DNA of 64,000 nt, taken from the sequence record MT135025.1. One strand, written 5' to 3'. Of the stretch, positions 29,402-44,302 are shown piece by piece. The first letter of the stretch is position 1, and each line of letters begins with the position of its first letter. The position numbers and the translations under genes were made by a program. A model generated the notes under the pieces. That model saw only the letters and a program-made list of their open reading frames with translations, did no database searches and was not told where the DNA came from.

Positions 29402-29932
29402 CTATTTGCGCCCCTTACGATTTGCCTTATTTGCTTTTCTTTTTGCTCTACGCAATTCTTTGCGTTTTGCGATTTTGTCTGCACGTCTAACTGCATCATA
29501 ATCCGCAGCACACGACGCAGCAAACGCATCAGGCTTGAAAACGGGTTCTTGACCCACGTATCCCAAGATAGTGCCCTTAGCTTCGTTATACGCAACGTGT
29601 GAACGATGGGATGGGTCTGGGTTGATGTCAACGTGAACTTCAAACCCACGAGTACCACACATTGGCTTAACACGCAGGGCGGTTTCACCTGCTTTATAGA
29701 CTTCATTCATCAAACGACTACGAATACCATCTTTACAAGACATGTACGCTGGTTCAGTTTCGATAGATTTGAATACTTGAGCGCCTTTACTACCCTCAAG
29801 GTGAATGATGATTACAGTAGCGTAACTAATCATATCACTCTTACGCTTGCTATCACACCCAACATAAATCGTACTGTTCGGATGACTGTTATTGATAGCT
29901 GTTTCAATTGCTTCCCAATCGAACATTTTCAC
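29402..29932 (-). CDS. RNase H-like YkuK-family protein
   Basis: IYVGCDS, RLMNEV, EVHVDIN, KPDAFAASCAAD. Confidence 0.8.
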   Translation of the reverse strand: MKMFDWEAIETAINNSHPNSTIYVGCDSKRKSDMISYATVIIIHLEGSKGAQVFKSIETEPAYMSCKDGIRSRLMNEVYKAGETALRVKPMCGTRGFEVHVDINPDPSHRSHVAYNEAKGTILGYVGQEPVFKPDAFAASCAADYDAVRRADKIAKRKELRRAKRKANKANRKGRK

Positions 29933-29976: not shown

Positions 29977-31413
29977 TTAAAAGCTGTAGCGATCAACGCC
30001 TACAGTTTTCAGCATGATCTTGACTGGCTCAAGCTCACCACCCAACAATGAAGTCAGGATAGATGGGCTACAACCCGATACCAGTGCAGTACCCGCTTCG
30101 CCAGCTTTAACCGGAACGTTGCCAAGACGACCACGAATGTTCCAGAAGACTAGTTGTGGCATTTCATAGCCAGCACGTGCGTACATAGCTTTGATTGCGT
30201 CGAAGTTTGCACGTTCGCCGCGACCATACCAGCCGCCACCAGTGTTTGCTTGGTCGAATTCCATGTCGCTCATGATAAGCAACTTGGTTGGCATTTCTTC
30301 TTGTGAAAGATTTGCACGTTTCGCACGCTCTAACAGAACGTTAAAGCATTTACCGATGTTTGTGCTCATGTCTTCACCTGAGCGATTCATGTTGTCAAGA
30401 CGCTCTTTTAGTGAGCTACCGCGCAACTGGTGGAAGTGCGGATCGCTTGAGAACGAAATGAACTGATCTTTGAAGATGCCTTCATTGCGTTCAGCAACAT
30501 AGATGCCAAGAGACATTGCAACTTGCTTACAAGTCACACCCGAACGATCTGTACCTGCGTTGATTGGCGTGCTCATAGAGCCAGATACGTCAACAACAGG
30601 GATGATGCGCTCATCAGAGCCTTCCATGTAGTTCGGCAGAGCTTTCCATTGCTCGTTCGCTACAGACGCATTGCCATGACTAACGCTCTTAACGACATCA
30701 TATGGGAACAATGCACCAGCGTTGATCTTCGCTTCACCTTTTTGAAGTGACTCGATGTAGCTTGTGTAACGAGCAGAAGCGTTACGACCGAATGCTTGTT
30801 GATAACGAGCAGACGCTACAGATGGCAACTTACCAAAGTCGATTGCATCCCATTCTTGAGCACACATCTTCTGTTCAACAGTGTCAGACAAAAGTGCTAG
30901 AATCTTACGCCACTGCTTCGCAGTTACACCAAGAGACTTGATTGTGCGCTTGAACACATGACCGTTTTTGCTGTTTTCACGTGGGAACCACTTAGCAGCA
31001 AGACCGTTCTTGTCGTTTACAATCGCGTTTGACCACAATGTGATCGCGTCTTTCTCAAGACTTGTACCGAACGCAGAAATCAAGTCGTCGAAACGACCTA
31101 GTTCTGGAATTTTCGACATTACAGCACGAGCTACGTCAGGCTGCTCATTACAAAGTTTAGTGAATAGAGTACGGAAAGTACCACGTTCACCCGCACCACC
31201 GCGAACATCACGAGACCATAAAAGAATGCGTGTCGCTAGTTCGGGGTTTTCTGCAAACGCACGACCGAACAGTGTTTTAGACTGATCGTTACCACGCATA
31301 GCAGCAATACCGAAGAACAAGTTTAGACACTCGTTACCTGAAGTGCTGTGAGTAACTGCACCGTTTGCTGTACGTGAATCGTTTGATTGCATAGCGTTCA
31401 TAAATGCTGACAT
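29977..31413 (-). CDS. Ro60/TROVE-like DUF2828 protein with C-terminal vWA domain
   Basis: RTANGA..STSGNECLNLF, RDVRGGAGER, GRFDDL, AKWFPRE, VVDVSGSM, SDMEFD, VFWN. Confidence 0.85.
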   Translation of the reverse strand: MSAFMNAMQSNDSRTANGAVTHSTSGNECLNLFFGIAAMRGNDQSKTLFGRAFAENPELATRILLWSRDVRGGAGERGTFRTLFTKLCNEQPDVARAVMSKIPELGRFDDLISAFGTSLEKDAITLWSNAIVNDKNGLAAKWFPRENSKNGHVFKRTIKSLGVTAKQWRKILALLSDTVEQKMCAQEWDAIDFGKLPSVASARYQQAFGRNASARYTSYIESLQKGEAKINAGALFPYDVVKSVSHGNASVANEQWKALPNYMEGSDERIIPVVDVSGSMSTPINAGTDRSGVTCKQVAMSLGIYVAERNEGIFKDQFISFSSDPHFHQLRGSSLKERLDNMNRSGEDMSTNIGKCFNVLLERAKRANLSQEEMPTKLLIMSDMEFDQANTGGGWYGRGERANFDAIKAMYARAGYEMPQLVFWNIRGRLGNVPVKAGEAGTALVSGCSPSILTSLLGGELEPVKIMLKTVGVDRYSF

Positions 31414-32151: not shown

Positions 32152-32518
32152 CAATATATTCCTTAATCGGCTTAGAAAAGTGACGAATACAAGAACTGTC
32201 AAGTCGTTTACGACCATCACCATCTATATCAGGTAGTGTGTATTCGTCATTAAACGGCTGACCGCTTTCTTTCGCAATCTCATAGGCATCGGCTCGATTG
32301 AAGTATTCACCACAATAGTTGATAAACCCCTGACCGCGATCCCCGAGTTCGTTTCGATGTTCATATGTACAACCTAGTTCTTTCAATAACTTAAAGACTG
32401 ATTGCATGTTTCGACCGAAATGGCAGCTATCAGCAACAACAATGTCGCGCACTTCACCGTTCGGTAGTGTCACTCGAATTGCATTAGCAGCAGACGATAT
32501 TACATTGACGTGCGACAT
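32144..32518 (-). CDS. Conserved phage hypothetical protein
   Basis: QGFIN..GEYFNR.DAY.IA...GQ pattern. Confidence 0.75.
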   Translation of the reverse strand: MSHVNVISSAANAIRVTLPNGEVRDIVVADSCHFGRNMQSVFKLLKELGCTYEHRNELGDRGQGFINYCGEYFNRADAYEIAKESGQPFNDEYTLPDIDGDGRKRLDSSCIRHFSKPIKEYIDG

Positions 32519-32856
32519 GTATCGTACCTCATAAAAATTGAACCAACGCGCTTATACTGTCCAGAGTGAGAAAGCAACCGAGCCATTTTACTATGACCAA
32601 CGGGATTGCTTGTCACTAGAACAACAGTGCGCGGAAAATTACGATGATCAATCGCATGAGAGAGAATATCATACCCCTCTCTACCAACATCATCACCTAG
32701 GTCATTATCCATGAATAGAGTGATGTCAGTTAGATTTGTGTGCTTGACGAAATTCATACCGTATTCGAATGTACGAAGAACTAGCTTTTCATCGTCGCGT
32801 ACGTAATCTGACGTGAACTTATTAATATCACGCAGATCATCAATCATAACGTACAT
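32500..32856 (-). CDS. Cyclic-phosphate-processing receiver-domain protein
   Basis: IDDLR, DNDLG, GYD, TSNPVG motifs. Confidence 0.75.
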   Translation of the reverse strand: MYVMIDDLRDINKFTSDYVRDDEKLVLRTFEYGMNFVKHTNLTDITLFMDNDLGDDVGREGYDILSHAIDHRNFPRTVVLVTSNPVGHSKMARLLSHSGQYKRVGSIFMRYDTCRTSM

Positions 32857-34563: not shown

Positions 34564-34824
34564 GCAATACACAGACATTCGAGAAGTGTTTTATCGTCTT
34601 TGCTTAAATCTCAATTGACTATCTCGATGTTTCTCATCGAGAAAATACCCATGATTCGGCATGAGACCTATTTCGTTTTACAGTACGAACACCGTCTTAA
34701 TGGTCATTTCCTACCACGAGAATGCGACAGGCTCACGTCATCACTGAGAAAGCAGCTAGTGCGCCTCATTACTATTAAAGTTTGCTTCTTTGATTAGTAA
34801 TATTGCTGTACAATGTCTTATTGC
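34564..34824 (-). ncRNA. Large structured RNA L1 (261 nt) with terminal helix + CAGCAA
   Basis: 5' GCAAUA-AGACAUU pairs with 3' AAUGUCU-UAUUGC; core shared with L2. Confidence 0.7.
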
Positions 34825-34829
34825 GAATT

Positions 34830-34918
34830 TGGCGGAGATACTGGGAATCGAACCCAGAGAACGCTATTAACGTCCGACACCTTAGCAGGGTGCTGTCATA
34901 CCTTTAGACCATATCTCC
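34830..34918 (-). tRNA. tRNA-Ser(GCU)
   Basis: Cloverleaf with long variable arm, CCA. Confidence 0.92.
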
Positions 34919-34923
34919 GTAGA

Positions 34924-35103
34924 TCATTTCTTACCACGCTCTGCTTTGCTAATCTCGACAGCAGCGATTTGCGCGTTGGCTTCTTTCTCAGTGTCATGAG
35001 TACCAAGTACTCGACCTTTAGATGAAAGAGCAACCCATTTGTCGCCACGCTTCTCGACTTTCTCAACAAGCTTGTGGTATTCATCAAACGTTTTAAGTTT
35101 CAT
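34924..35103 (-). CDS. 59-aa putative internal head protein (missed by ORF track)
   Basis: TATAAATA late promoter, GAGG RBS, MKLKTFDEYHKLVE...GDKW...LGTHDTEKEANAQ. Confidence 0.75.
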   Translation of the reverse strand: MKLKTFDEYHKLVEKVEKRGDKWVALSSKGRVLGTHDTEKEANAQIAAVEISKAERGKK

Positions 35104-35154
35104 TTGTCATCCCTCAGTTAGTTTATTGTATTTATAACTGAACGACTTTTAAAC

Positions 35155-35355
35155 AGTGGCATGCTGCTCTCATGCTCAGACACATATTTGCTCTTATTGC
35201 AGGCGTGTGCCACGCGCAGCGCAGATCCCTTTTGATAATTTAATGACCAGCGGGACTCTTAGCAGGTCTTACACATAGCCTTTCAGCTATATCTTCTTTT
35301 AAGACCATAGTGTCGTACGGTCTAATCACTCTCTTTCGATTCGCGTTGCTAAGTG
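35155..35355 (-). ncRNA. Unidentified multi-hairpin RNA
   Basis: Non-coding; hairpins at 35159-35175, 35275-35290, 35302-35323. Confidence 0.45.
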
Positions 35356-35359
35356 AATT

Positions 35360-35436
35360 TGGTGCCCAACCCGAGATTCGAACTCGGATCATCTAGTGTT
35401 TGAAACTAGCGCCTCTGCCAATTGGACTAGTTGGGC
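35360..35436 (-). tRNA. tRNA-Leu(CAA)
   Basis: Cloverleaf, CCA. Confidence 0.92.
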
Positions 35437-35439
35437 TTG

Positions 35440-35550
35440 AATGAGCTGCCGCAACTCTTTAATCCCTAACGCCTGTCAGCTTTCGCCCGGCTGAGACCGT
35501 TTTCAACGGCGGTAGTCTAGCTTCGTGTAGAACGCGGCTTATGCTAGAGT
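35440..35550 (-). ncRNA. Unidentified GC-rich structured RNA
   Basis: GCCGC/GCGGC closure; CCGUU-GAA-AACGG and UCAGC..GCUGA hairpins. Confidence 0.45.
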
Positions 35551-35551
35551 T

Positions 35552-35628
35552 TGGTACGCACGGGCGGATTCGAACCGCCATCCCTGAGATTTTAAGCCTC
35601 ATGCCTCTGCCAATTGGACCACGTGCGC
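35552..35628 (-). tRNA. tRNA-Leu(UAA)
   Basis: Cloverleaf, CCA. Confidence 0.92.
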
Positions 35629-35630
35629 AG

Positions 35631-35704
35631 TGGAGCCCGAACAGAGAATCGAACTCTGACCGCGGGATTTGCAATCCCTCATACTTCCATTATACGATTC
35701 GGGC
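35631..35704 (-). tRNA. tRNA-Cys(GCA)
   Basis: Cloverleaf, CCA. Confidence 0.9.
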
Positions 35705-35712
35705 AATTTGTT

Positions 35713-35806
35713 AGTGCATTGCATGGACTACTGGCGATCTTAATGGGTATCTCAAGCATTCAGAATTCCCATGCGCTACTACAATGCTTTTTTCGCTAAA
35801 TGCACT
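35713..35806 (-). ncRNA. Unidentified RNA with 8-bp terminal stem
   Basis: AGUGCAUU/AAUGCACU termini; inner AUGGG/CCCAU. Confidence 0.4.
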
Positions 35807-35807
35807 T

Positions 35808-35884
35808 TGGGGTGACAGACGGGGATCGAACCCGCATCTTCCGGAATCACAACCCGGGGGTATTTCCACTTCACCCACTGCCAC
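35808..35884 (-). tRNA. tRNA-His(GUG)
   Basis: Cloverleaf, C discriminator, CCA. Confidence 0.88.
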
Positions 35885-35938
35885 ACCAAAGTACACTTTG
35901 GGATGTTTACGACATCAAACGAATGCGCTCCCTGTGCA

Positions 35939-36178
35939 TTAATCAGTTTTCTTTAAGTAGATACTATCAGGCGATAGCTCTCTCGTAAACATATTTTTGA
36001 AATAAATTTCGATGTCATCAGAAGTTGTTGAAGACTCAATTTCAAGAGCACGTTCTAAAATCTTACCGCGTTTATAACCAGCGCGCCAACAGTCAAACAT
36101 AAGTCTGTCCATGCGTTTCAGTTTTTCAATTTGGTTTTGATTTACGTATTCGTGAGTTTCAAGTAATACAGGCGTCAT
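35939..36178 (-). CDS. Hypothetical protein
   Basis: GAGAAA RBS. Confidence 0.7.
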   Translation of the reverse strand: MTPVLLETHEYVNQNQIEKLKRMDRLMFDCWRAGYKRGKILERALEIESSTTSDDIEIYFKNMFTRELSPDSIYLKKTD

Positions 36179-36201
36179 AATTTATTTCTCATCATAAAGA
36201 A

Positions 36202-36275
36202 TGGTAGTCCCTAGTGGAATCGAGCCACTTCTTTCTCTGTGTAAAAGAGACGTACTGCCATTATACTAAGGGACC
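36202..36275 (-). tRNA. tRNA-Val(UAC)
   Basis: Cloverleaf; T loop CUCGAUU variant. Confidence 0.85.
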
Positions 36276-36280
36276 AAAAT

Positions 36281-36354
36281 TGGAGCGGGTACACGGACTC
36301 GAACCGAGACGAACGACTTGGAAGGACGTCATGCTACCATTACATCATACCCGC
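36281..36354 (-). tRNA. tRNA-Gly(UCC)
   Basis: Cloverleaf, CCA. Confidence 0.88.
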
Positions 36355-36358
36355 ATTG

Positions 36359-36516
36359 TTAATCTGAAGCGTCGAACAAATCACGTATTGCACGCAGATT
36401 CGTAAGCTCTACAGTAAGTGTTCTTATAAAGAACGGGTTGGTCTCTTTCGCGAGACGATTTTCAACACAGCGAATCTTATCGCGTATGTTGCCCTTGCTT
36501 AGTGTAAAGTAGTCAT
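36359..36516 (-). pseudogene. Small gene with an apparent 1-nt frameshift
   Basis: GAGGA RBS + ATG gives MTTLH*; the open frame SKGNIRDKIR... continues in a shifted frame. Confidence 0.4.
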
Positions 36517-36541
36517 GCTTCTTATCCTCTTTGCTTGAATT

Positions 36542-36617
36542 TGGTGGAGACACCGATACTCGAAATCGGATCTAATGGCTTATGAGACCATTGCTCTACC
36601 ACTTGAGCTACATCTCC
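36542..36617 (-). tRNA. tRNA-Met(CAU)
   Basis: Cloverleaf, CCA. Confidence 0.88.
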
Positions 36618-36621
36618 AAAA

Positions 36622-36840
36622 GTAGTAATTAACTCATTTAATCGCACACGGGCTGACACCATATATTCATGGTCTGAGCGAGGAACCACATAGTGGGTAC
36701 TATTACCTCATCTTAGTTTTGATTGTTTTACATGACGATAACTAGAAACGTTCATAATAATGCCACGCGATACTTCCTGTATCACGGCTAACTGAGTTAG
36801 CATATCGTGCCTTTCGGCTGTAGTGTCGTTTCCGACGAAT
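36622..36840 (-). ncRNA. Unidentified multi-hairpin RNA region
   Basis: Hairpins GUCG-GAAA-CGAC, GCC-GAAA-GGC, GCUAAC-UCA-GUUAGC, GAUAC-AGGAA-GUAUC, ACCAU..AUGGU. Confidence 0.45.
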
Positions 36841-36847
36841 TAAGTAC

Positions 36848-37061
36848 AGACAATACCGAAGTGTTTTTTCGTCTTTAACATGAATCGGAGTTGACTATCT
36901 TGTTGCTTCTCAACAAGCAAATATCGTCTGTTTCAGCGACGCGCCTATCTGACTATTTCTAGGCAGAGAGAATCTTTCCTTTCAAGCTGCACCGAAGCAC
37001 TGCCCAGGTTAAGATCATTACCATTTTTAGTAAGATTTTAATTTGTTGCTGTATATTGTCT
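36848..37061 (-). ncRNA. Large structured RNA L2 (214 nt), paralogue of L1
   Basis: AGACAAUA/UAUUGUCU termini + CAGCAA; shared core with compensatory changes. Confidence 0.7.
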
Positions 37062-37122
37062 CTCAAACCATGCTCGTGATATGCCGAAGCAAGTATCATT
37101 CGCCGCATGATAGAGCTTAATC

Positions 37123-37198
37123 TGGCATCCCCAGAGGGATTCGAACCCACAACCCACGACTTAGAAGGTCGTTGCTCTTCCAATTGAGCTATGAGGAC
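37123..37198 (-). tRNA. tRNA-Arg(UCU)
   Basis: Cloverleaf, CCA. Confidence 0.92.
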
Positions 37199-37207
37199 GT
37201 TGAAAAG

Positions 37208-37273
37208 AATTCGATCCATGAGCTATTGCGTAGAAGATGGTAGTAAAGAGACTCTACACTCATGTGATCGAAA
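37208..37273 (-). ncRNA. Long imperfect hairpin RNA
   Basis: UUCGAUC..AUGAG..UAGA / UCUA..CUCAU.GAUCGAA. Confidence 0.4.
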
Positions 37274-37275
37274 TT

Positions 37276-37350
37276 TGGTGGACACGCAGGGAGTCGAACC
37301 CTATCTTCCTCATTGCAAGTGAGGCGCTTTCCCAATTAAGCTAACGGCCC
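37276..37350 (-). tRNA. tRNA-Ala(UGC)
   Basis: Cloverleaf, CCA. Confidence 0.9.
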
Positions 37351-37357
37351 ATAATTA

Positions 37358-37567
37358 TTACAACTGTGTGATTGAAATATGATCCCAGCCGTATAGACCT
37401 TCAAGCTCTTCAATCGGCTCACCAACAATATCAGAAATATATTCAGCAACTTTTGCTTCAATTTCTTCATCAGATAGTTTTTCATCAACGGAAAAAGCAT
37501 CTTCGTTATTGTTGCCACCGAAATAGCCACCAATGTCATATTCACACCATATTGAAATATAGTTCAT
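37358..37567 (-). CDS. Acidic hypothetical protein
   Basis: GAGAA RBS before MNYISIW. Confidence 0.7.
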   Translation of the reverse strand: MNYISIWCEYDIGGYFGGNNNEDAFSVDEKLSDEEIEAKVAEYISDIVGEPIEELEGLYGWDHISITQL

Positions 37568-37592
37568 GTTATTCTCACAGTTGTTTAGAAAA

Positions 37593-37668
37593 TGGTGCCC
37601 TGACACGGATTTGAACCGCGAACCTGCTCATTACAAGTGAGCTGCACTGCCAGTTGTGCTATCAGGGC
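37593..37668 (-). tRNA. tRNA-Thr(UGU)
   Basis: Cloverleaf, CCA. Confidence 0.92.
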
Positions 37669-37674
37669 GTTACT

Positions 37675-37787
37675 GAGTGTTATTACTTGCGTCGTCCAGA
37701 CCAGAGATACCAACTCTGAAAGGGAATCGAACCCCAAACATTTCTTTTCGTAAGAAGAATATTAGTAATTGTTTGCTGAAAACACTC
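37675..37787 (-). ncRNA. YrlA-like Y RNA (permuted tRNA mimic)
   Basis: Order: terminal stem + CAGCAA, T arm (GUUCGAUU), loop-closed acceptor CAGAG/CUCUG, D arm GUC-UGGAC-GAC, 3' strand. Confidence 0.75.
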
Positions 37788-37796
37788 TTCGGTATT

Positions 37797-37870
37797 TGGC
37801 AGGGGATAACGGATTCGAACCGGTACTGCGTGAGTCAAAGTCACGTATGCTGCCTTTACATCAATCCCCT
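37797..37870 (-). tRNA. tRNA-Gln(UUG)
   Basis: Cloverleaf, CCA. Confidence 0.9.
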
Positions 37871-37889
37871 ATTATTCTTAAATTATCTT

Positions 37890-37965
37890 TGGCGGAACCG
37901 ACGGGGCTCGAACCCGCTTCCTTTCCCGTGACAGGGGAATATGCACCCAGTTACACCTCGGCTCC
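37890..37965 (-). tRNA. tRNA-Asp(GUC)
   Basis: Cloverleaf, CCA. Confidence 0.9.
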
Positions 37966-38033
37966 CCAAAGACAACTTAAATTAGTTGCTTTGTTTTTCA
38001 AGTTCACACTTAACGGTAGTGACTCTCCGAATT

Positions 38034-38109
38034 TGGCGCTTCATGTTGGACTCGAACCAACGACTCTCTGATTAACAGTCAGACACTCTACCAACTGAGT
38101 TAATGAAGC
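38034..38109 (-). tRNA. tRNA-Asn(GUU) 1
   Basis: Cloverleaf, CCA. Confidence 0.92.
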
Positions 38110-38110
38110 G

Positions 38111-38185
38111 TGGCGGGCGTGGAGAATTTCGAAATCTCGACCTTCAAGTTAACAGCTTGCTGCTCTGCCTCTGAGCTACACACCC
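38111..38185 (-). tRNA. tRNA-Asn(GUU) 2
   Basis: Cloverleaf, CCA. Confidence 0.88.
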
Positions 38186-38189
38186 TTTA

Positions 38190-38260
38190 AATTAAACAGC
38201 AATCCTTTTCTCTTTTTCCAAATAAAAGTTTTGTATTGTTTGCTGAAAGATTGCTTAATT
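38190..38260 (-). ncRNA. Minimal Y-like RNA Y2
   Basis: AGCAAUC/GAUUGCU stem + UUU CAGCAA; shares UUCAGCAAACAAU with the YrlA-like RNA. Confidence 0.6.
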
Positions 38261-38263
38261 CTG

Positions 38264-38452
38264 TTACAACGTAAACTGCTCGACTTTACAAGAGTCAACA
38301 TCGTCAAACTTTTCGATTCGTCTAGCTAACATTTTAGCCTTTCGCTCAATCGAACGATCTTCGTAACCGAATTCAGATTTGTTATTGTCACAAGCTAATG
38401 CGCTCGACTTGACAACAGTCGAATCATTCATTACCATCACTAGTCTGTACAT
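38264..38452 (-). CDS. Hypothetical protein
   Basis: GAGGTG RBS. Confidence 0.6.
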   Translation of the reverse strand: MYRLVMVMNDSTVVKSSALACDNNKSEFGYEDRSIERKAKMLARRIEKFDDVDSCKVEQFTL

Positions 38453-38468
38453 AAACACCTCTGATAAT

Positions 38469-38542
38469 TGGCAGGGACATAGAGATTCGAACTCTAACGA
38501 ACGGGTTTGGAATCCGTCATGCTGCCTTTACATCATGTCCCT
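38469..38542 (-). tRNA. tRNA-Trp(CCA)
   Basis: Cloverleaf, CCA. Confidence 0.9.
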
Positions 38543-38548
38543 AAAATT

Positions 38549-38622
38549 TGGTAGCCCCAGACAGACTCGAACTGTCAACGTGCGATTATCGGTCGCGTGT
38601 TTTACCGTTAAACTATGGAGCT
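38549..38622 (-). tRNA. tRNA-Ile(GAU)
   Basis: Cloverleaf; loop CCGAUAA (C33). Confidence 0.85.
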
Positions 38623-38686
38623 AAAGTGAGCACATTACAGTGCTCGTGTTAATCGGTTAAGCGACTAAACTTCCCGGTTAACTAAT

Positions 38687-38785
38687 TGGCGGAAGACTAG
38701 GGATTCGAACCCTAACATCACCTCCCGGTGACCGACGGTTTTCAAGACCGTTGCCGCTACCCAGAATCTTTCGGCTAAGCCTTCC
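38687..38785 (-). tRNA. tRNA-Ser(UGA) with enlarged D loop
   Basis: Long variable arm; D loop AAAGAUUCUGGGUA. Confidence 0.85.
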
Positions 38786-38792
38786 ATTAATT

Positions 38793-38869
38793 TGGTTGCG
38801 TGGGGCTGGATTCGAACCAGCGTTCTCCGGCTTATGAGACCGACGAGATGACCACTTCTCTACCCCGCA
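38793..38869 (-). tRNA. tRNA-Met(CAU), initiator-like
   Basis: GCGGGGUAGAGAAG..UCGUCGG body; one bulged acceptor nucleotide. Confidence 0.8.
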
Positions 38870-38879
38870 ATTATTCAAC

Positions 38880-38963
38880 AGCTTGCGTTCTTTGGTCTGT
38901 TTATCGCTGTCTGAGTACTCGTCTAGCGATCAATAGATTAAGTTGAATTGCAGTATGCAAGCT
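38880..38963 (-). ncRNA. Minimal Y-like RNA Y3
   Basis: AGCUUGC/GCAAGCU stem + AUA CUGCAA; inner AUCGCU/AGCGAU helix. Confidence 0.6.
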
Positions 38964-38968
38964 AAAAC

Positions 38969-39054
38969 TGGTGGAGCGTAGAGGAATCGAACCTCTCTAC
39001 CCGTTAAGGGTCAGGGATTTACAGTCCCCTGTCTCACCTTGAGACGTACGCTCC
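38969..39054 (-). tRNA. tRNA-Tyr(GUA)
   Basis: Cloverleaf with variable arm, CCA. Confidence 0.9.
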
Positions 39055-39060
39055 AGAATA

Positions 39061-39135
39061 TGGTTCTCCCGACGAGATTCGAACTCGCGCACTTCACCTT
39101 GAAAGGGTGATGACCTACCGTTAGTCCACGGGAGA
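39061..39135 (-). tRNA. tRNA-Glu(UUC)
   Basis: Cloverleaf, CCA. Confidence 0.92.
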
Positions 39136-39198
39136 ATTAAATTGTATATTGATTTGCAAGCTATTTAACTCGCAAAGCGATACACAATGTATCTAATT

Positions 39199-39275
39199 TG
39201 GTACGCCGCCCTGGACTCGAACCAGACACCTGAGAGTTAAAAGCTCCCTGCTCTTCCATGATGAGCTACCGACGC
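39199..39275 (-). tRNA. tRNA-Lys(UUU) 1
   Basis: Cloverleaf, CCA. Confidence 0.9.
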
Positions 39276-39286
39276 ATTATAAAATC

Positions 39287-39361
39287 TGGTGGGTCGCATG
39301 AGATTCGAACTCACACCGGTCTGGTTAAAAGCCAGATGTACTACCGTTATACGAACGACCC
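39287..39361 (-). tRNA. tRNA-Lys(UUU) 2
   Basis: Cloverleaf, CCA. Confidence 0.9.
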
Positions 39362-39367
39362 AGAATG

Positions 39368-39442
39368 TGGTGCACCCCCTCGGAATCGAACCGAGCACTG
39401 CGGGACTTCAATCCGCCGCTTTTCCTGATAAGCTAAGGGTGC
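39368..39442 (-). tRNA. tRNA-Phe(GAA)
   Basis: Cloverleaf; loop UUGAAGU. Confidence 0.85.
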
Positions 39443-39443
39443 A

Positions 39444-39520
39444 TGGTACGCATGAAGAGATTCGAACTCTTATCATTCGGCTTCTAAGACCGACGCCTCT
39501 GCCAATTGGGCTACATGCGC
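39444..39520 (-). tRNA. tRNA-Leu(UAG)
   Basis: Cloverleaf, CCA. Confidence 0.9.
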
Positions 39521-39545
39521 ATTAAATTTTGTAAACTTCTTTTCT

Positions 39546-39576
39546 TCATTGTACATGATGTTTATATCGTTGTAAA
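39546..39576 (-). promoter_or_regulatory. T4-like early promoter within the RNA cluster
   Basis: GTTTAC-N18-TACAAT. Confidence 0.6.
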
Positions 39577-39739
39577 CATCTTTTTGAAATATTTTGAAGA
39601 ACTTAACGTTTTCATTTCTATGTGTTAATATTAACACTCACTCAAGACATCTTAAACACTAATTTGTGAAAAAGTTCGTTAAATTCTATCATCACGACAG
39701 TACTTAACGAGATACGGTCCTAAGCGTATCATATAAATT

Positions 39740-39863
39740 CAGAATGGTGAGACTTGAACTCACTTCGAGTAATAGCGTAAACTAACAGTTGTTGCCAGAG
39801 GCTATCAATTATTCTCTACCGAGTATGTTGCAACTCTGCATTTCCCCATTTCTAGGCATTCTG
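39740..39863 (-). ncRNA. tRNA-body chimera C1 (expanded anticodon arm, no CCA)
   Basis: CAGAAUG/CAUUCUG acceptor, GUGAG-UUCAAGU-CUCAC T arm, insert with AGAG/CUCU then GGCAAC. Confidence 0.6.
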
Positions 39864-39868
39864 AAATA

Positions 39869-39944
39869 TGGCACCCAATACAAGATTCGAACTTGTAACC
39901 TTCGCCTTCGTAGGGCGCTGCTCTTCCAATTGAGCTAATCGGGC
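39869..39944 (-). tRNA. tRNA-Arg(ACG)
   Basis: Cloverleaf, CCA. Confidence 0.92.
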
Positions 39945-39952
39945 ATTAAAAC

Positions 39953-40029
39953 TGGTCCGTGACAAGCGATTCGAACGCTTAACTTCTCCGCCCCAAACGG
40001 AGTACTCTACCAGATTGAGCTAGTCACGG
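39953..40029 (-). tRNA. tRNA-Pro(UGG) 1
   Basis: Cloverleaf, CCA. Confidence 0.9.
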
Positions 40030-40038
40030 ATTTTAAAT

Positions 40039-40112
40039 TGGTCGGGACGAAGAGACTCGAACTCTTACCACATGCTCCCAAAGCATGAACGCTGCCTTTA
40101 CGCCACGTCCCG
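40039..40112 (-). tRNA. tRNA-Pro(UGG) 2
   Basis: Cloverleaf, CCA. Confidence 0.9.
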
Positions 40113-40187
40113 TTTGTTCTTTAACTTTGTTTATCATACTCTGCATTCAAAGTACGTTAAACAAAATTTTTTGATTTCCTTCGCCCA

Positions 40188-40213
40188 TAAAAAAGGACGC
40201 TACGTGCGTCCTC
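40188..40213 (-). terminator. Terminator
   Basis: aggacgc-acgta-gcgtcct + T6 on the minus strand. Confidence 0.75.
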
Positions 40214-40481
40214 AAGTATACTTCTATGTTATACTATTGGACTACGTTTGTGGAGACCACTCTTGTTTCGCACACGGATTCGCTAGATACACGAATTCTG
40301 AGCGCAGAAAATCGCTGCGTAAAATCATATCAGAATGTGTATTCGAATGTGTCATGGAAACTCTCTAAACGTTAAAATAAAAATGTTTTTGTTTGTATAA
40401 TAGTACTTATAACACCAATTTTGACGATTTGCGGTATTTTCGCAGAAAATTGAAAAAAAAATTCAACTTTCTGCGATTTTC

Positions 40482-40715
40482 TTATCGACCTAGGTGTTTT
40501 CGCTTGTTCATTTCAACAAGAATTTCATCGTTGTAATGGCGGTTCAGTTCAACATACTTCTTGTGTTGATCTGAAGTCAACTCGTTAGTGTCATTCAGAT
40601 GCTTCAAGAACCCAAGAGGTTTGCGAAACGACTTGCGATATTCGTTCAGACGCTCGTCCGTTAGATTATGCAGTTGTTTCGGAGTCAGTAAAGTTTTATT
40701 GATGTCAAAACTCAT
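40482..40715 (-). CDS. Hypothetical protein
   Basis: GAGGT RBS before MSFDINK. Confidence 0.7.
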   Translation of the reverse strand: MSFDINKTLLTPKQLHNLTDERLNEYRKSFRKPLGFLKHLNDTNELTSDQHKKYVELNRHYNDEILVEMNKRKHLGR

Positions 40716-40740
40716 GTTGTACCTCACTTGTTATTAAAAT

Positions 40741-40856
40741 TGGTAGTCGGGGCTGGATTCGAACCAGCGACCACGTGCTTAACAGGCAATTGAAGGAGTG
40801 CTGGAGCGATACTTGTCAGTATCATTCTTCGTGCTCTACCACTGAGCTACCCGACT
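40741..40856 (-). ncRNA. tRNA-Asn(GUU) body with a 41-nt insert in the anticodon stem (C2)
   Basis: Removing the insert gives CGUGC-CUGUUAA-GCACG; insert has GAUACU-GACA-AGUAUC + CAGCAC. Confidence 0.8.
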
Positions 40857-40861
40857 ATGAA

Positions 40862-41383
40862 TTATTTAACTTTGAACTTCAAATTACGCCAGTCAAAGTT
40901 TCGTTTGTTCTTTGTGCTATAGAACGTGCCCCAATCAATAGCAATAGGACAGTTCTTACTCCCCACACGAGCGATAAAGACATCGTGAGTCTCGCTGTAA
41001 CGCTCTCTAAGCTCTTTTACGCGCTTATCGTAGTTAGCGATATACTCTGCACAAGCTTTGTTGTAATCAGCTTTAGAGAAGCGTTCATTGCTTGCAAAGA
41101 CACGCCCGAGGTACGGTCGAATAACACGCACTCGCTCTTTAGACCAGCCCATACTGAAGCTGTTTTCAATCTCGCCAGTGATTTTACCAGTCTTCTTACA
41201 TCTAGCAAGAATAACCCAACAACGCTCACGTCGAAAATCTTTTCGTACGTACACGTTAACGTGCTTGTCAATGTACTCTTGGTAACGAGCGTTATACTCA
41301 GCACGCAGTTTATTGCGTACTTCAGGAGACATTGCAGCGCGTTCTTCTTTCGAAAACGCTTGTGCGAATTTCAATGGTTTCAT
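40862..41383 (-). CDS. Hypothetical basic protein
   Basis: GAGGA RBS before MKPLKF. Confidence 0.8.
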   Translation of the reverse strand: MKPLKFAQAFSKEERAAMSPEVRNKLRAEYNARYQEYIDKHVNVYVRKDFRRERCWVILARCKKTGKITGEIENSFSMGWSKERVRVIRPYLGRVFASNERFSKADYNKACAEYIANYDKRVKELRERYSETHDVFIARVGSKNCPIAIDWGTFYSTKNKRNFDWRNLKFKVK

Positions 41384-41396
41384 TATAATTTCCTCT

Positions 41397-41636
41397 TGGC
41401 GCCGCTCGTGTGAATCGAACACACGTCAAACACAACACCTCGTCCACCCGATTAGAGTTTCGAAGTAAGAGCTAATCAGCATTTCGGAGCAGTCGAGCGT
41501 TATTTCTACGAGTGAGCTTTCGACAACTCACACGCACTTTCTACTCGGTCCCAGTGATTCGGTACCAACACAGGTTGCGAACCTATGTCTGCACTAATGT
41601 TGGGAAAACACTGCGTATTGTACACCAGTTAGCGGC
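41397..41636 (-). ncRNA. 240-nt tmRNA-shaped RNA with tRNA-like ends
   Basis: GCCGCU/AGCGGC acceptor, GUGUG-UUCGAUU-CACAC T arm, G-CCA end; ~190-nt multi-hairpin interior. Confidence 0.7.
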
Positions 41637-41643
41637 ATTTTAT

Positions 41644-41874
41644 TTAAAGATAGCTGTCAAATACATCATCATCAACTTCTTCAATATTGATGTCAGCGTA
41701 ACATTCATTCGCAATTGCTTGAATTTCATCTATTGAAACTGTACCTGAGTACAAAACAACAGCGTCATCCGGAATCACAACATCACACATGTATTTGTTA
41801 AACATTGCAGTTCTGAAATCAGAATCAACAGAGTAACCGTGCATTGATGTGATAACTAGCAATTTATGTGACAT
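41644..41874 (-). CDS. Hypothetical protein
   Basis: TTGACA-N17-TAGTAT promoter, GAGGA RBS. Confidence 0.75.
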   Translation of the reverse strand: MSHKLLVITSMHGYSVDSDFRTAMFNKYMCDVVIPDDAVVLYSGTVSIDEIQAIANECYADINIEEVDDDVFDSYL

Positions 41875-41951
41875 AATGTTTTCCTCGTGTAGTTGATAAT
41901 GTGTATACTACACGTTGATGAAACGCCTGTCAACAACTTTTTCAATTTTTT

Positions 41952-42028
41952 TGGTAGCCCCTCTCGGATTCGAACCGAGAACCTGACGATTATGAGTCGT
42001 CTGCTACTACCGTTACAGCTAAGGGGCT
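41952..42028 (-). tRNA. tRNA(CAU), Ile2-like
   Basis: GCCCCUUAGCU...GACUCAUAAUCG resembles lysidine tRNA-Ile2. Confidence 0.85.
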
Positions 42029-42395
42029 ATCGTTCTAGAAATCGACCGACTTTAGCAGCGAAGATGTTTGCTTCTTCTGCAATCAAAGCAGTTGATTTCA
42101 TTTGATGAAAAGCGTCTTGTTGATGCAGGACATCTAGTTTACCAGCGCATTTCATCAGTTCTTTTACTGATTGCATAATCTCAATGTTATCAATCTGACT
42201 CGTGTCAGGGTGATGGTTGAGACTATCCAAGATAGGGAGTACTTGTTGATAGTAACCCATGCCGATGAAGTTTATCATAAGTCTGTACTGCATTTCAACA
42301 GCAAATGTACAATATTTTCGAAGATTGCGTTTTACAATCTCACAACGATGCAAGATACAATCAAGCTCGTCATTTATGTCATCAAACTTATTCAT
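42027..42395 (-). CDS. Hypothetical protein
   Basis: GAGG RBS before MNKFDD. Confidence 0.7.
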   Translation of the reverse strand: MNKFDDINDELDCILHRCEIVKRNLRKYCTFAVEMQYRLMINFIGMGYYQQVLPILDSLNHHPDTSQIDNIEIMQSVKELMKCAGKLDVLHQQDAFHQMKSTALIAEEANIFAAKVGRFLER

Positions 42396-42409
42396 AAAAC
42401 CTCGAAAAT

Positions 42410-42533
42410 TGGTGGAGAGTGATGGATTTGAACCACCGACCAAAAGATTTACCTAGTTATTAAGGTTTGCAGCATGAATGCTTGTCAGTATTCTTTAACA
42501 TTCTTTTGCTCTACCAGACTGAGCTAACTCTCC
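42410..42533 (-). ncRNA. tRNA-body chimera C3 (anticodon loop replaced by motif domain, CCA present)
   Basis: AAAGA/UCUUU stem encloses GAAU-ACUGACAAGC-AUUC + AUG CUGCAA. Confidence 0.75.
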
Positions 42534-42543
42534 AGAATTTGAG

Positions 42544-42654
42544 GGTGAAGTACAGGACTCGAACCTGCGACCTCCGGCGTGCAATACATGCAGCATGAAA
42601 TCTTAACAGATTTCTTTTTAGGCCGGCATTCTAACCAACTGAACTAACTTCACC
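42544..42654 (-). ncRNA. tRNA-Asp-like body chimera C4
   Basis: CCGGC/GCCGG stem encloses GAAAUCU-GUUA-AGAUUUC + AUG CUGCAU. Confidence 0.75.
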
Positions 42655-42664
42655 AATGTAAAAA

Positions 42665-42802
42665 CATATAGTTGCGGGTGTAGGATTCGAACCTACATCA
42701 CGATCTTATGAATGATATGCGAAATTGGTTGCCGTACAGATTCTTATCAGAATCAGTTTTGTGCTACGTGTGCTACCACTTACACCAACCCGCAACTATA
42801 TG
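42665..42802 (-). ncRNA. tRNA-body chimera C5 (CAU loop retained, extended acceptor stem)
   Basis: Insert GAUUCU-GAUA-AGAAUC + UGUA CGGCAA; ~15-bp terminal helix, no CCA. Confidence 0.75.
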
Positions 42803-42869
42803 CTTTCGGGATGCTTACGCAGGTTCTTCTCTACGTAAGCACAGATCCTCAATGTATATTTTGCCTTAG

Positions 42870-43025
42870 CTAATCACAACACAACCCAATATCGTGCGCT
42901 TTAATTACGGGATTGATGACCCGTTCGCATGTGATTAGCGTAAAAGTATGATTACGCACCTTTTCTTCTTCAATGTCCAAGGCAAAGAGGACTATGAATA
43001 CCAGTGCGAGAAGATATACAATCAA
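42870..43025 (-). CDS. Small membrane protein
   Basis: GAGG RBS + TTG start; N-terminal hydrophobic stretch. Confidence 0.45.
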   Translation of the reverse strand: MIVYLLALVFIVLFALDIEEEKVRNHTFTLITCERVINPVIKAHDIGLCCD

Positions 43026-43048
43026 ATTGCTCACCTCGCTTAATAAGT

Positions 43049-43195
43049 GAGAGTACATTGGTCGAGTGTAACGGAATCGAACCGTTCCCACGATCTCCCT
43101 ATGATATGCGTAAATTGGTTGCTGAATATAATCATGTCTGATTACAGTATGCTACGTGTGCTGCCACTACACCAACACTCGACCAATATACTCTC
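43049..43195 (-). ncRNA. tRNA-body chimera C6 (paralogue of C5, extended acceptor stem)
   Basis: Insert UAAUC..GAUUA + UUCAGCAACCAAUUU; ~20-bp terminal helix. Confidence 0.75.
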
Positions 43196-43599: not shown

Positions 43600-43854
43600 T
43601 TAAACGGAAATGATAATGCCGCTTTCAGTCTCACCTCGTTCAAGCGCAGCGTGCTTGATCTGAAGTTGTGATACTGCTTGCTGAAGTTCAATAATAGCTT
43701 TGTCATAAAGCTTGTTGTTCTCTTTAAGCAAAGCAATCTGATCGGTCTGCATACCAATGATGTACGTTAGTAGAACAACGTTCTCATCAGTCGTCAGCGT
43801 TTCAGGCGCTTCATTGTACTTCTTCAGCACCGCTTCGGTAGATAGATCAGTCAT
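43600..43854 (-). CDS. Coiled-coil hypothetical protein
   Basis: Coupled to 57B. Confidence 0.7.
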   Translation of the reverse strand: MTDLSTEAVLKKYNEAPETLTTDENVVLLTYIIGMQTDQIALLKENNKLYDKAIIELQQAVSQLQIKHAALERGETESGIIISV

Positions 43855-44302
43855 TATTAGCAACCCATTCTAGATCTAATGGTTCGATATATTCATCGAC
43901 AAGGCGAACCTCTGTATTGATGAACATAGGGGTGATTACGTCGTCATAAGACAATGTGACGTGCGGAGTATAGTCAGGGTAATCGTGAGTACCACCGATA
44001 GAGATAAGGTCTTCGTGACGTTCTACAAGAGCAGGACATGACATCTTAGCAACGACCGCGTGTTTACCGTCTTGCGTTTTCCAACAGTCAACTTGTTCAA
44101 CAGTGGCAACGAAAGTGGTATCTACAACAGGCACATCAATTTGCTTACGACTATAAAGCACAGTCACGTGAAATTTATCTGGATCTAACGGATTTTTTAG
44201 ACGAAGCGTTTTTTGCAAGCGAACTAGCTCTTGCTTACTTGCTTCGTCTAATTTGATACCAACGTAAGTTCCCTGACTCTCAAGGAACTTAGATAGTTTC
44301 AT
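43847..44302 (-). CDS. 57B: 2H phosphoesterase gp57B / Acb1-like anti-CBASS nuclease
   Basis: Two HxT motifs (FHVTVLYS, PHVTLSY); T4 synteny. Confidence 0.88.
   Translation of the reverse strand: MKLSKFLESQGTYVGIKLDEASKQELVRLQKTLRLKNPLDPDKFHVTVLYSRKQIDVPVVDTTFVATVEQVDCWKTQDGKHAVVAKMSCPALVERHEDLISIGGTHDYPDYTPHVTLSYDDVITPMFINTEVRLVDEYIEPLDLEWVANND

Follow-up and report, generated by a model that had tools for sequence, protein, structure and literature searches.

The stretch of DNA analysed here, referred to below as the window, comprises 64,000 nucleotides (nt) of sequence record MT135025.1 and is DNA of Vibrio phage V07, a KVP40-like phage; both V07 and KVP40 are T4-type Schizotequatroviruses. 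Beside 28 ordinary tRNAs called by ARAGORN at 34830-42028, a stretch of 2.5 kb (100% identity to V07 and 96.6% to KVP40) carries five further tRNA-like elements, C2 to C6, which are the main subject of this work together with the gene of a Ro60-like protein (29977-31413), their candidate partner. Every feature of the window discussed, C2, C5 and C6 included, lies on the minus strand. The tRNAs were called with ARAGORN with and without introns and with the Rfam model RF00005 (gathering score 29 bits). When introns are allowed, ARAGORN adds exactly five genes to the ordinary ones, namely C2 (40741-40856), C3 (42410-42533), C4 (42543-42653), C5 (42671-42794) and C6 (43059-43181), and the anticodons that it assigns to them are arbitrary. 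An earlier note, made from the sequence alone, had expected tRNA scanners to call C2, C5 and C6 pseudo- or intron-containing tRNAs; in existing records C2, C3 and C4 are labelled 'tRNA-Pseudo-3/4/5' (KVP40) and C5 and C6 'tRNA-OTHER' (phi-pp2).

In C2, C5 and C6 an extra block is set into the 5′ strand of the anticodon stem. In all three it starts immediately 3′ of A26-C27-G28, so that the stem is broken past its second base pair (bp), as the earlier note had described; among relatives this position proved nearly, although not strictly, fixed, some inserts of BUCT-ZZ01 and Aeromonas phages being placed past the third base pair instead. C2 (40741-40856) has a tRNA-Asn(GUU)-like body with an encoded CCA, an insert of 41 nt (40789-40829) and a retained anticodon loop CUGUUAA (40779-40785). 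Scripted deletion of the 41 nt gives the perfect tRNA-Asn(GUU) that had been claimed, with the stem CGUGC/GCACG, and the landmarks of a tRNA are all kept, namely U8, A14, G18G19, the T-loop UUCGAAU, the 7-nt CUGUUAA loop and the encoded CCA. C5 (42660-42806) has a tRNA-like core (42671-42794) within a terminal helix of about 19-20 bp, an insert of 50 nt (42717-42766) and a loop AUUCAUAA (42706-42713), which contains the CAU reported before but is 8 nt rather than 7 nt long. C6 (43045-43200) is indeed a paralogue of C5 with a changed loop, that is, the 7-nt AUAGGGA with AGG; its core (43059-43181) lies within a terminal helix of about 21 bp, and its insert (43106-43154) has 49 nt. Excision of the insert by script likewise gives a canonical cloverleaf in C6, in ZZ01_a and ZZ01_b, and in C5 with the 8-nt loop. 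C5 and C6 have no free 3′ CCA; their ends are enclosed by the terminal helix of about 20 bp, which covaries. In the cores of both, the blocks UUGGUGUAGUGG.AGCACACGUAGC, GCAUAUCAU and AGAUCGUG are invariant. An alternative CAU/GUG pairing rivals the two proximal base pairs of C5 and C6, and the bases involved never vary; a pairing of GUAGC with GCAAC proposed by RNAalifold in these two elements was set aside, every base being invariant.

C3 (42410-42533) and C4 (about 42544-42653) have an intact anticodon stem, of 5 bp in C3, on which about 53 nt replace the whole loop in the former and about 42 nt replace the loop in the latter. Relatives of C3 are present in Cronobacter phage S13. T loops of the form UUCGA(A/U)U and D loops with G18G19 are found in all elements, that is to say, the real T and D arms that also mark the bacterial RNA YrlA. 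On the Rfam tRNA model C2 reaches 49.8 bits, its anticodon arm being interrupted by a gap of 54 nt, and C3 and C4 reach 55.5 bits each, the gaps of the three ranging from 39 to 54 nt; C5 and C6 are not reported even at E <= 1.

All five inserts, and those of the relatives, contain a common ungapped module of 34 nt, located at 40794-40827 in C2, 42463-42496 in C3, 42584-42617 in C4, 42725-42758 in C5 and 43115-43148 in C6. The alignment of 30 distinct modules from 13 phages has 34 columns and no gap, and the hairpin and CNGCA motif that the earlier note had seen in the inserts are both parts of it. The module runs from N3 through a 7-bp stem, capped by a GNNA tetraloop that U-A and C-G close, to N-U-N, C-N-G-C-A and, in most cases, one more A, with G11, U23, C25, G27, C28 and A29 invariant; in C4, for example, it contains GAAAUC-UGUUAA-GAUUUC-AUG-CUGCA. 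Changes on both sides occur at seven of the seven stem pairs, which is covariation: 94.8% of the cells are paired, a share that falls to 36-46% once the partner is shifted by 1-3 columns, and the observed score is not matched in any shuffle. A covariance model built from the 34-nt module (R1) and run on the 64 kb and on gene-bearing loci has exactly five matches in the window, all of them within C2-C6 (35.7-39.8 bits, E <= 5e-5), while the bare pattern has four exact matches in the window against 0.91 expected even with one mismatch permitted. Insert-bearing tRNA-likes were found by BLAST with C3-C6 as queries in Cronobacter S13, BUCT-ZZ01 and Aeromonas APT65; the pattern run on the collection also retrieved KVP40, VH7D and three Aeromonas-phage contigs, together with false positives in L102 and L104. 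Since the C5 stem of V09 and phi-Grn1 is S13-like (GCAAAC.../GUUUGU) where V07 has UGAUUC.../GAAUCU, modules appear, from these sequences, to have been swapped between genes.

C2 shows 100% identity in KVP40, V09, V05, phi-Grn1 and VH7D, and C6 shows 99-100% over the KVP40-group phages (99% in phi-Grn1 and VH7D), whereas the open reading frames adjoining C2 and C6 reach only 76-91% in phi-Grn1 and VH7D. Because their identity exceeds that of the flanking genes, C2 and C6 are, as judged by these comparisons, under purifying selection and are not decaying pseudogenes; the preference of the earlier note for an appendage over decay is supported by this and by the covariation of the module stem. 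The design is common to Vibrio, Aeromonas, Cronobacter and BUCT-ZZ01 phages. Distant C2-type RNAs, which occur in K566, D479, the 'Synechococcus' phage BUCT-ZZ01 and three Aeromonas-phage contigs, keep it with covarying acceptor and T stems, and their CUGUUAA loop is invariant save for CCGUUAA in D479; in Aeromonas they have terminal helices of 12-13 bp and no CCA. This strict conservation of the loop suggests that the function involves something that reads it, perhaps Tgt, AsnRS or a nuclease. Only the C2-type RNAs have an anticodon, GUU, that is stable among orthologues: the corresponding triplet of C5/C6 orthologues is CAU, UUC, UCU, UCA, AGG or UAG on bodies that are near-identical.

The gene at 29977-31413 encodes a protein of 478 amino acids with the Pfam domains DUF2828 and DUF7788 and a vWA domain with a DxSxS MIDAS, in which the residues D275, S277 and S279 are invariant. 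The product matches phrog_850 'RNA-binding protein' and has 49% identity to its S13 homologue. Its AlphaFold model, built on 32 homologues, has a pLDDT of 80 and a pTM of 0.81. When this model was compared with the PDB by Foldseek, matches 1-8 spanned the full length and belonged without exception to Ro60 (X. laevis, human, D. radiodurans and Thermus phage phiLo; TM 0.39-0.62, E 4e-7 to 3e-5), and all lower-ranked matches were restricted to the vWA domain. As modelled, the protein has the HEAT-repeat ring and the vWA/MIDAS domain that characterise Ro60. By tblastn the family is present in 711 of 50,697 phage records, and a protein collection holds more than 7,700 clusters of the DUF2828 type; it occurs in Felixounavirus, in phages of Campylobacter, Listeria and Staphylococcus, and in cluster-L mycobacteriophages, whose records call it 'Ro-like RNA binding protein'. 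As for the surroundings of the gene in V07, a gene with a cREC_REC ('cyclic-phosphate processing receiver') domain lies upstream at 32500-32856 and an RNaseH_like (PF04308) gene immediately downstream at 29402-29932, and these neighbours hint at an RNA-repair or RNA-processing island.

The protein and the module also occur together outside V07. In S13, BUCT-ZZ01 and APT65 the module-bearing tRNA-likes adjoin a gene of about 467 amino acids with DUF2828 and DUF7788, and all module-bearing lineages found by BLAST (Vibrio, S13, BUCT-ZZ01, APT65 and further Aeromonas phages) encode a DUF2828-type protein; the distance from gene to element is about 0.1-2.5 kb, on the same strand, in S13, BUCT-ZZ01, APT65 and the Aeromonas locus L108. 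For a wider view, 80 IMG/VR loci with a DUF2828-type gene were fetched. In these, R1 gives weak matches only, 44 of 46 of them on the gene's strand and mostly within a few hundred bases of the gene, and ARAGORN with introns finds only the S13-like L061 and an unrelated long tRNA-Leu. The latter is a tRNA-Leu-like gene of 130 nt with a different insert of about 40 nt and without the module (L035 15438-15567 and L038 11524-11653), on two contigs that both carry a Ro60-like gene.

A linear form of the same arm was recognised from the IMG/VR flanks and from the intervals adjoining the gene in Listeria LP-064, mycobacteriophage Snenia and Campylobacter F207. In this form the parts follow one another as stem strand a, 2-3 nt, CAGCAA, a variable body, strand a′ and (C)UGNNA, or, as a consensus, stem, UUA-CAGCAA, body, 3′ stem strand and the tail CUG; a Listeria example is AGGAAUC-UAA-CAGCAAUUACUA...GAUUCCU-GUGAUA. 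The order in the V07 module is a′, C-UGNNAA-G, a, N-U-N, CNGCA-A. Since identical parts are joined in the opposite order, the V07 module is read as a circular permutation of the linear unit, its loop standing for the RNA ends. Linear units occur in phages of Listeria, Mycobacterium, Campylobacter, Felixounavirus and Aeromonas. In the count of their enrichment, which covers 84 loci, their density is 0.53 per kb up to 700 nt from the gene on its own strand, compared with 0.04-0.06 per kb elsewhere and on the opposite strand, a 10-15-fold enrichment (59 units near the gene on its strand against 4 on the opposite one), and at least one perfect unit is present in 34 of these loci. This enrichment is supportive, not blind, because the regular expression for the linear unit was composed post hoc, with examples already in view. 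The Felixounavirus 'dune' has four units within 1.1 kb after the gene; the Snenia unit, whose body follows the YrlA design with its T arm, capped acceptor-like hairpin and D arm, reaches 39.3 bits on the YrlA family RF02553, for which the unit of L088 scores 41.4 bits. Directly upstream of the Ro60-like gene of APT65 (L016 1611-1856) stands a tandem array of 4-5 units of about 50 nt resembling the Class I RNAs of Dictyostelia, each with ...CAGCAAUCU... and a CUGUU tail. In Listeria LP-064, about 1 kb upstream of the DUF2828 gene, there is a ROOL RNA match of 87.4 bits (L099 2423-2974; gathering score 99.1), and a gene for the ligase RtcB lies about 1.3 kb downstream.

V07 itself also has linear units, five of them in the gaps of its tRNA cluster, where dinucleotide shuffles give a mean of 0.55 and none of 300 reaches five. 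Two are long: 34573-34818, with AGACAUU-GUA-CAGCAAUAUUACUA...AAUGUCU-GUGUAU followed by a terminator-like hairpin, and 36849-37060, with GACAAUA-UA-CAGCAA...UAUUGUC-UGUACUU. The Y-like unit at 37669-37796 starts with GAGUGUU-UU-CAGCAA-ACAAUUACUA and continues with a T-arm (GGGGUUCGAUUCCCU), a D-like hairpin and AACACUC-AGUAAC, so that its tRNA-like domain is permuted. The short unit at 38197-38254 reads GCAAUC-UUU-CAGCAA...GAUUGC-UG and scores 27.4 bits on Dicty_Class_I_RNA (RF01414), below the gathering score of 41.5 bits. The fifth, at 38880-38963 between tRNA-Met and tRNA-Tyr, reads AGCUUGC-AUA-CUGCAA...GCAAGCU-GUUGAA.

Because the arm is common to C2-C6 and to small RNAs beside the Ro60-like gene in unrelated phages, the most likely reading, held with moderate confidence, is that C2-C6 are neither working nor broken tRNAs, but are stable, tRNA-shaped, Y-RNA-like docking RNAs of the phage Ro60-like protein. 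Each RNA, presumably expressed as such, would fold into a full tRNA L-shape with a self-contained arm projecting from the anticodon stem, and the arm would be a 7-bp helix with a U-GNNA-A cap followed by the single-stranded N-U-N-C-N-G-C-A-A, that is to say, the closed and circularly permuted terminal stem of the small RNAs that accompany DUF2828/vWA proteins. The protein encoded at 29977-31413 would bind this arm in the way that Y-RNA stems are bound by Ro60, while the tRNA body would be the second, effector module of the particle, a bait or tether for proteins that read the tRNA shape, candidates for which are processing, modification or repair enzymes and host anticodon nucleases; the C2-type RNAs would additionally display the Asn GUU anticodon loop. 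The putative pair is one of a DUF2828-type Ro60 relative and its own motif, not the classical pair of TROVE and GNCGAA. The biological role is probably RNA repair or counter-defence.

Several observations weigh against Ro docking. The protein has no match to Pfam TROVE (PF05731), and phmmer against the PDB gives no Ro60 chain. On the side of the RNA, the YrlA motif GNCGAAN0-1G (PMC4201824) is absent from C2-C6, in which N-U-N-C-N-G-C-A-A is conserved instead; the best match to RF02553, of 30.4 bits against a gathering score of 69, spans the neighbouring C4 and C3 and so reflects a T-arm followed by a D-arm, not a true YrlA; and of a second helix (P2) closing the arm, for which the AU-rich GAAG/CUUC and AAAA/UUUU were candidate pairings, no convincing covariation was found. 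As for the genomic link, the V07 gene lies on the same strand as C2-C6 but 9.3-11.8 kb away, at the opposite end of the tRNA cluster. The strict covariance model has no significant match at the four distant loci of Felixounavirus, Campylobacter, Listeria and Mycobacterium, so that the distant lineages are tied to the module through the linear/permuted reading alone, which depends on the regular expression composed post hoc. Moreover, docking by itself does not account for an Asn loop so perfectly conserved among C2-type RNAs.

It is also conceivable, though rather unlikely, that the module is real and selected but is read by another factor, such as a processing nuclease, a modification enzyme or another RNA-binding protein of phage or host, and that its link with DUF2828 comes from a shared location in tRNA clusters. 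DUF2828 genes are nearly always in or beside such clusters, and position and partner are therefore confounded; the distance of 9-12 kb between the V07 modules and the gene agrees with this, as does the fact that the Class I RNAs of Dictyostelia, whose motif is similar, bind the RRM protein CIBP (PMC7919456). However, the linear units are closest to the gene itself, mostly at 20-500 nt, and at some loci, those of Snenia and many IMG/VR contigs among them, annotated tRNAs are scarce or absent in the vicinity. A processing signal would, besides, not be expected within the anticodon stem of an otherwise perfect tRNA body, and a stem with a conserved single-stranded motif on its 5′ side is the known binding mode of Ro60 and Y RNA.

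The elements could instead be intron-containing tRNA genes, from which the block of 41-50 nt would be removed and the halves ligated, for example by a phage RNA ligase, to give tRNA-Asn from C2 and other tRNAs from the rest. Like group I and archaeal bulge-helix-bulge introns, the block lies in the anticodon arm, its position is almost fixed, and its removal restores a canonical cloverleaf in C2, C6, ZZ01_a and ZZ01_b; some phages with a Ro-like gene encode an RNA ligase, and RtcB stands close to the gene in Listeria LP-064. Yet the block is too short for group I, is set in the stem, on its 5′ side, and not in the loop, and lacks bulge-helix-bulge geometry, and no intron family was matched in the Rfam scan of the C2-C6 region. 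No bacterial splicing route is known for a site within the 5′ strand of an anticodon stem. The conserved, structured module is also present in RNAs with no tRNA to restore and in the loop-replaced C3 and C4, and splicing is therefore disfavoured, contrary to the alternative left by the earlier note. In addition, spliced C5/C6 orthologues would decode different amino acids despite near-identical bodies, the loop of C5 would have 8 nt, and V07 already has two ordinary tRNA-Asn(GUU) genes. On balance, splicing is improbable.

Still somewhat less probable is that these are aminoacylated, translation-competent tRNAs on which the arm is a handle, even though C2 keeps all tRNA landmarks and passes the gathering score of RF00005. 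An arm of 41 nt that leaves the stem at 28/29 would be likely to collide with the decoding sites of the ribosome; C5 and C6 have no free 3′ CCA, their ends being locked in the covarying helix, and C2-type RNAs of Aeromonas have long terminal helices and no CCA; and the triplet of C5/C6 differs among orthologues, which speaks against decoding. The replaced loops of C3 and C4 and the two normal tRNA-Asn genes point in the same direction. Of the earlier proposal of a chargeable tRNA with a Ro-docking appendage, it is the appendage that has gained support, from the Ro60 fold of the protein and the motif beside its homologues, while chargeability has become doubtful. Decay of tRNA genes struck by a small insertion, which the 'tRNA-Pseudo' and 'tRNA-OTHER' labels and the arbitrary anticodon calls might suggest, is effectively refuted, with next to no probability left to it, by the conservation of C2 and C6 beyond that of their flanking genes, by compensatory changes in every helix and by the persistence of the design across Vibrio, Aeromonas, Cronobacter and BUCT-ZZ01 phages.

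In the neighbourhood of C6 and in the rest of the tRNA cluster some further features were recorded. The region upstream of C6 (43200-43600) is AT-rich and non-coding, with imperfect direct repeats (...catcttcagagaagagacagaaacgatgag... / ...catcttcaagaagaggcgagaacgatgaac...) and several promoter-like sites; sigma-70-like sites lie 5′ of C6 at about 43583-43556 and 43490-43463 and a terminator-like hairpin lies 3′ of it, all of these being consensus matches only. Directly upstream of C6, the gene at 43847-44302 encodes a gp57B homologue matching Pfam Acb1, an anti-CBASS 2H phosphodiesterase (E = 1.7e-46), syntenic with T4 57B, which heads the tRNA region there. At 37279-37350 Rfam recognises a tRNA (44.9 bits) that ARAGORN misses and that is 'tRNA-Pseudo-1' of KVP40. 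Finally, an unannotated structured RNA of about 245 nt (41395-41640) abuts the ribosome-binding site of an open reading frame of 173 amino acids. Its ends form a tRNA-like acceptor stem GCCGCU/AGCGGC, followed by GCCA, beside a T arm GUGUGUUCGAUUCACAC; it is kept in seven phages, among which its acceptor and T stems show compensatory changes and the blocks GAAUCAC, GUCGAA and GCUCUUACUUCGAAACUCU are invariant, and it has neither the module nor an Rfam match, nor is it called a tmRNA by ARAGORN.

The proposed identity can be tested for genes that have been called 'pseudo-tRNAs' since the KVP40 genome record, and phage tRNA counts, as well as the codon-usage arguments resting on them, should leave such genes out. 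At the same time, a compact RNA motif and a candidate partner are defined for a family of phage proteins that is very common but has no known function. Its Felixounavirus member gp130 of Bas63, a Ro60-like protein heading a tRNA cluster, has been reported to counter the bacterial defence Ppl, and the authors of that report guessed that some of the neighbouring 'tRNAs' are Y RNAs (10.1101/2024.10.10.617714).

Among known systems, rnaC and rnaD of T4 (species 1 and 2) are comparable in being unexplained, stable, tRNA-like RNAs of a T4-type tRNA region, in a syntenic position downstream of 57B/Acb1. They were rejected as relatives, for the module was not found in them (best covariance-model score 7.5 bits), and the stretch of T4 that was examined showed no Ro-like gene.

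A more distant likeness leads to the Class I RNAs, which are eukaryotic, 42-65 nt long and reported to be unique to Dictyostelia; they have a 6-bp terminal stem, an 11-nt motif past its 5′ strand and, on the 3′ side, a conserved CUGU, the C of which is paired to the 5′ G, and are bound by CIBP, with which GuaB, NdkC and the uncharacterised DDB_G0281243 were found in pull-downs (PMC7919456). In the RF01414 consensus, GaUcuC-CUUACAGCAA...GagAuC-UG, the layout is that of the linear phage units: a short stem joins the ends, the motif follows directly on the 5′ strand, and a CUG(U) tail closes the 3′ side, while the C4 module holds the same parts permuted, as GAAAUC-UG..., then GAUUUC-AUG-CUGCA. 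The IMG/VR unit of L075 scores 31.9 bits, again below the gathering score, and C2-C6 give no RF01414 match. The resemblance, as read from these sequences, is a lead and not a membership, and could reflect common descent as well as convergence. DUF2828 proteins may be the missing partners of the dictyostelid RNAs; DUF2828 is mentioned in papers on eukaryotes (plants and a tardigrade), while a search for a Dictyostelium DUF2828 homologue gave a list saturated by phage proteins, and the papers gave DDB_G0281243 no annotation. On a bolder view, which is tentative and rather doubtful at present, the arm would be the signature of a large unrecognised ribonucleoprotein system made of DUF2828-type Ro60 paralogues and RNAs of the kind 'stem + UUACAGCAA + CUG tail', with the Class I partners among the DUF2828 proteins and with the tRNA-embedded phage versions offering tRNA-shaped baits, an Asn GUU anticodon loop among them, to repair enzymes or to host defences that target tRNAs; its RNAs may take the form of free RNAs of 45-60 nt, of permuted tRNA mimics and of tRNA bodies of ordinary topology. 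The phage RNAs would in this way be tied to the orphan Class I RNAs of social amoebae.

The closest comparison is that with the Y RNAs. Bacteria and phages are both known to pair Ro60 with Y RNAs that have tRNA-like domains (PMC4201824, PMC12135203). Other proteins are tethered to Ro60 through Y RNAs, of which YrlA is a tRNA mimic (PMC4201824). The Ro60 of Thermus phage phiLo binds phage Y-like RNAs and the host PNPase (PMC12135203). C2-C6 would be a variation on this theme of Y RNA and tRNA mimic, possibly one of much wider reach. Like YrlA, which also occurs in phages (PMC4201824, PMC12135203), they are two-module RNAs that combine a stem, in their case a putative protein-binding one, with a conserved single-stranded motif on its 5′ side, and a tRNA-like domain with real T and D arms. 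YrlA is encoded near a ring-shaped protein of HEAT repeats and vWA; the gene of the candidate counterpart lies on the strand of the phage RNAs, within about 0.1-2.5 kb of them in S13, BUCT-ZZ01, APT65 and L108 and at 9.3-11.8 kb in V07. Elsewhere in the tRNA cluster RF02553 reaches 21 bits at best, and the linear relatives reach 39-41 bits, all below the gathering score. The motif of YrlA is GNCGAAN0-1G and that of the phage RNAs is UNCNGCAA; the partner of YrlA is classical Ro60, while that of the phage RNAs would be a DUF2828/DUF7788 protein in which Ro60 is recognisable by its predicted fold only. YrlA is a permuted tRNA that ends in the Ro-binding stem and has its acceptor stem capped, whereas C2-C6 end at the acceptor stem as a normal tRNA does and have the binding stem capped by the UGNNAA loop, and the C2-type RNAs, unlike YrlA, keep a full anticodon loop. 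That is to say, a Y-RNA-like binding stem would be graftable into an otherwise normal tRNA, which is the mirror image of the permuted design of YrlA.

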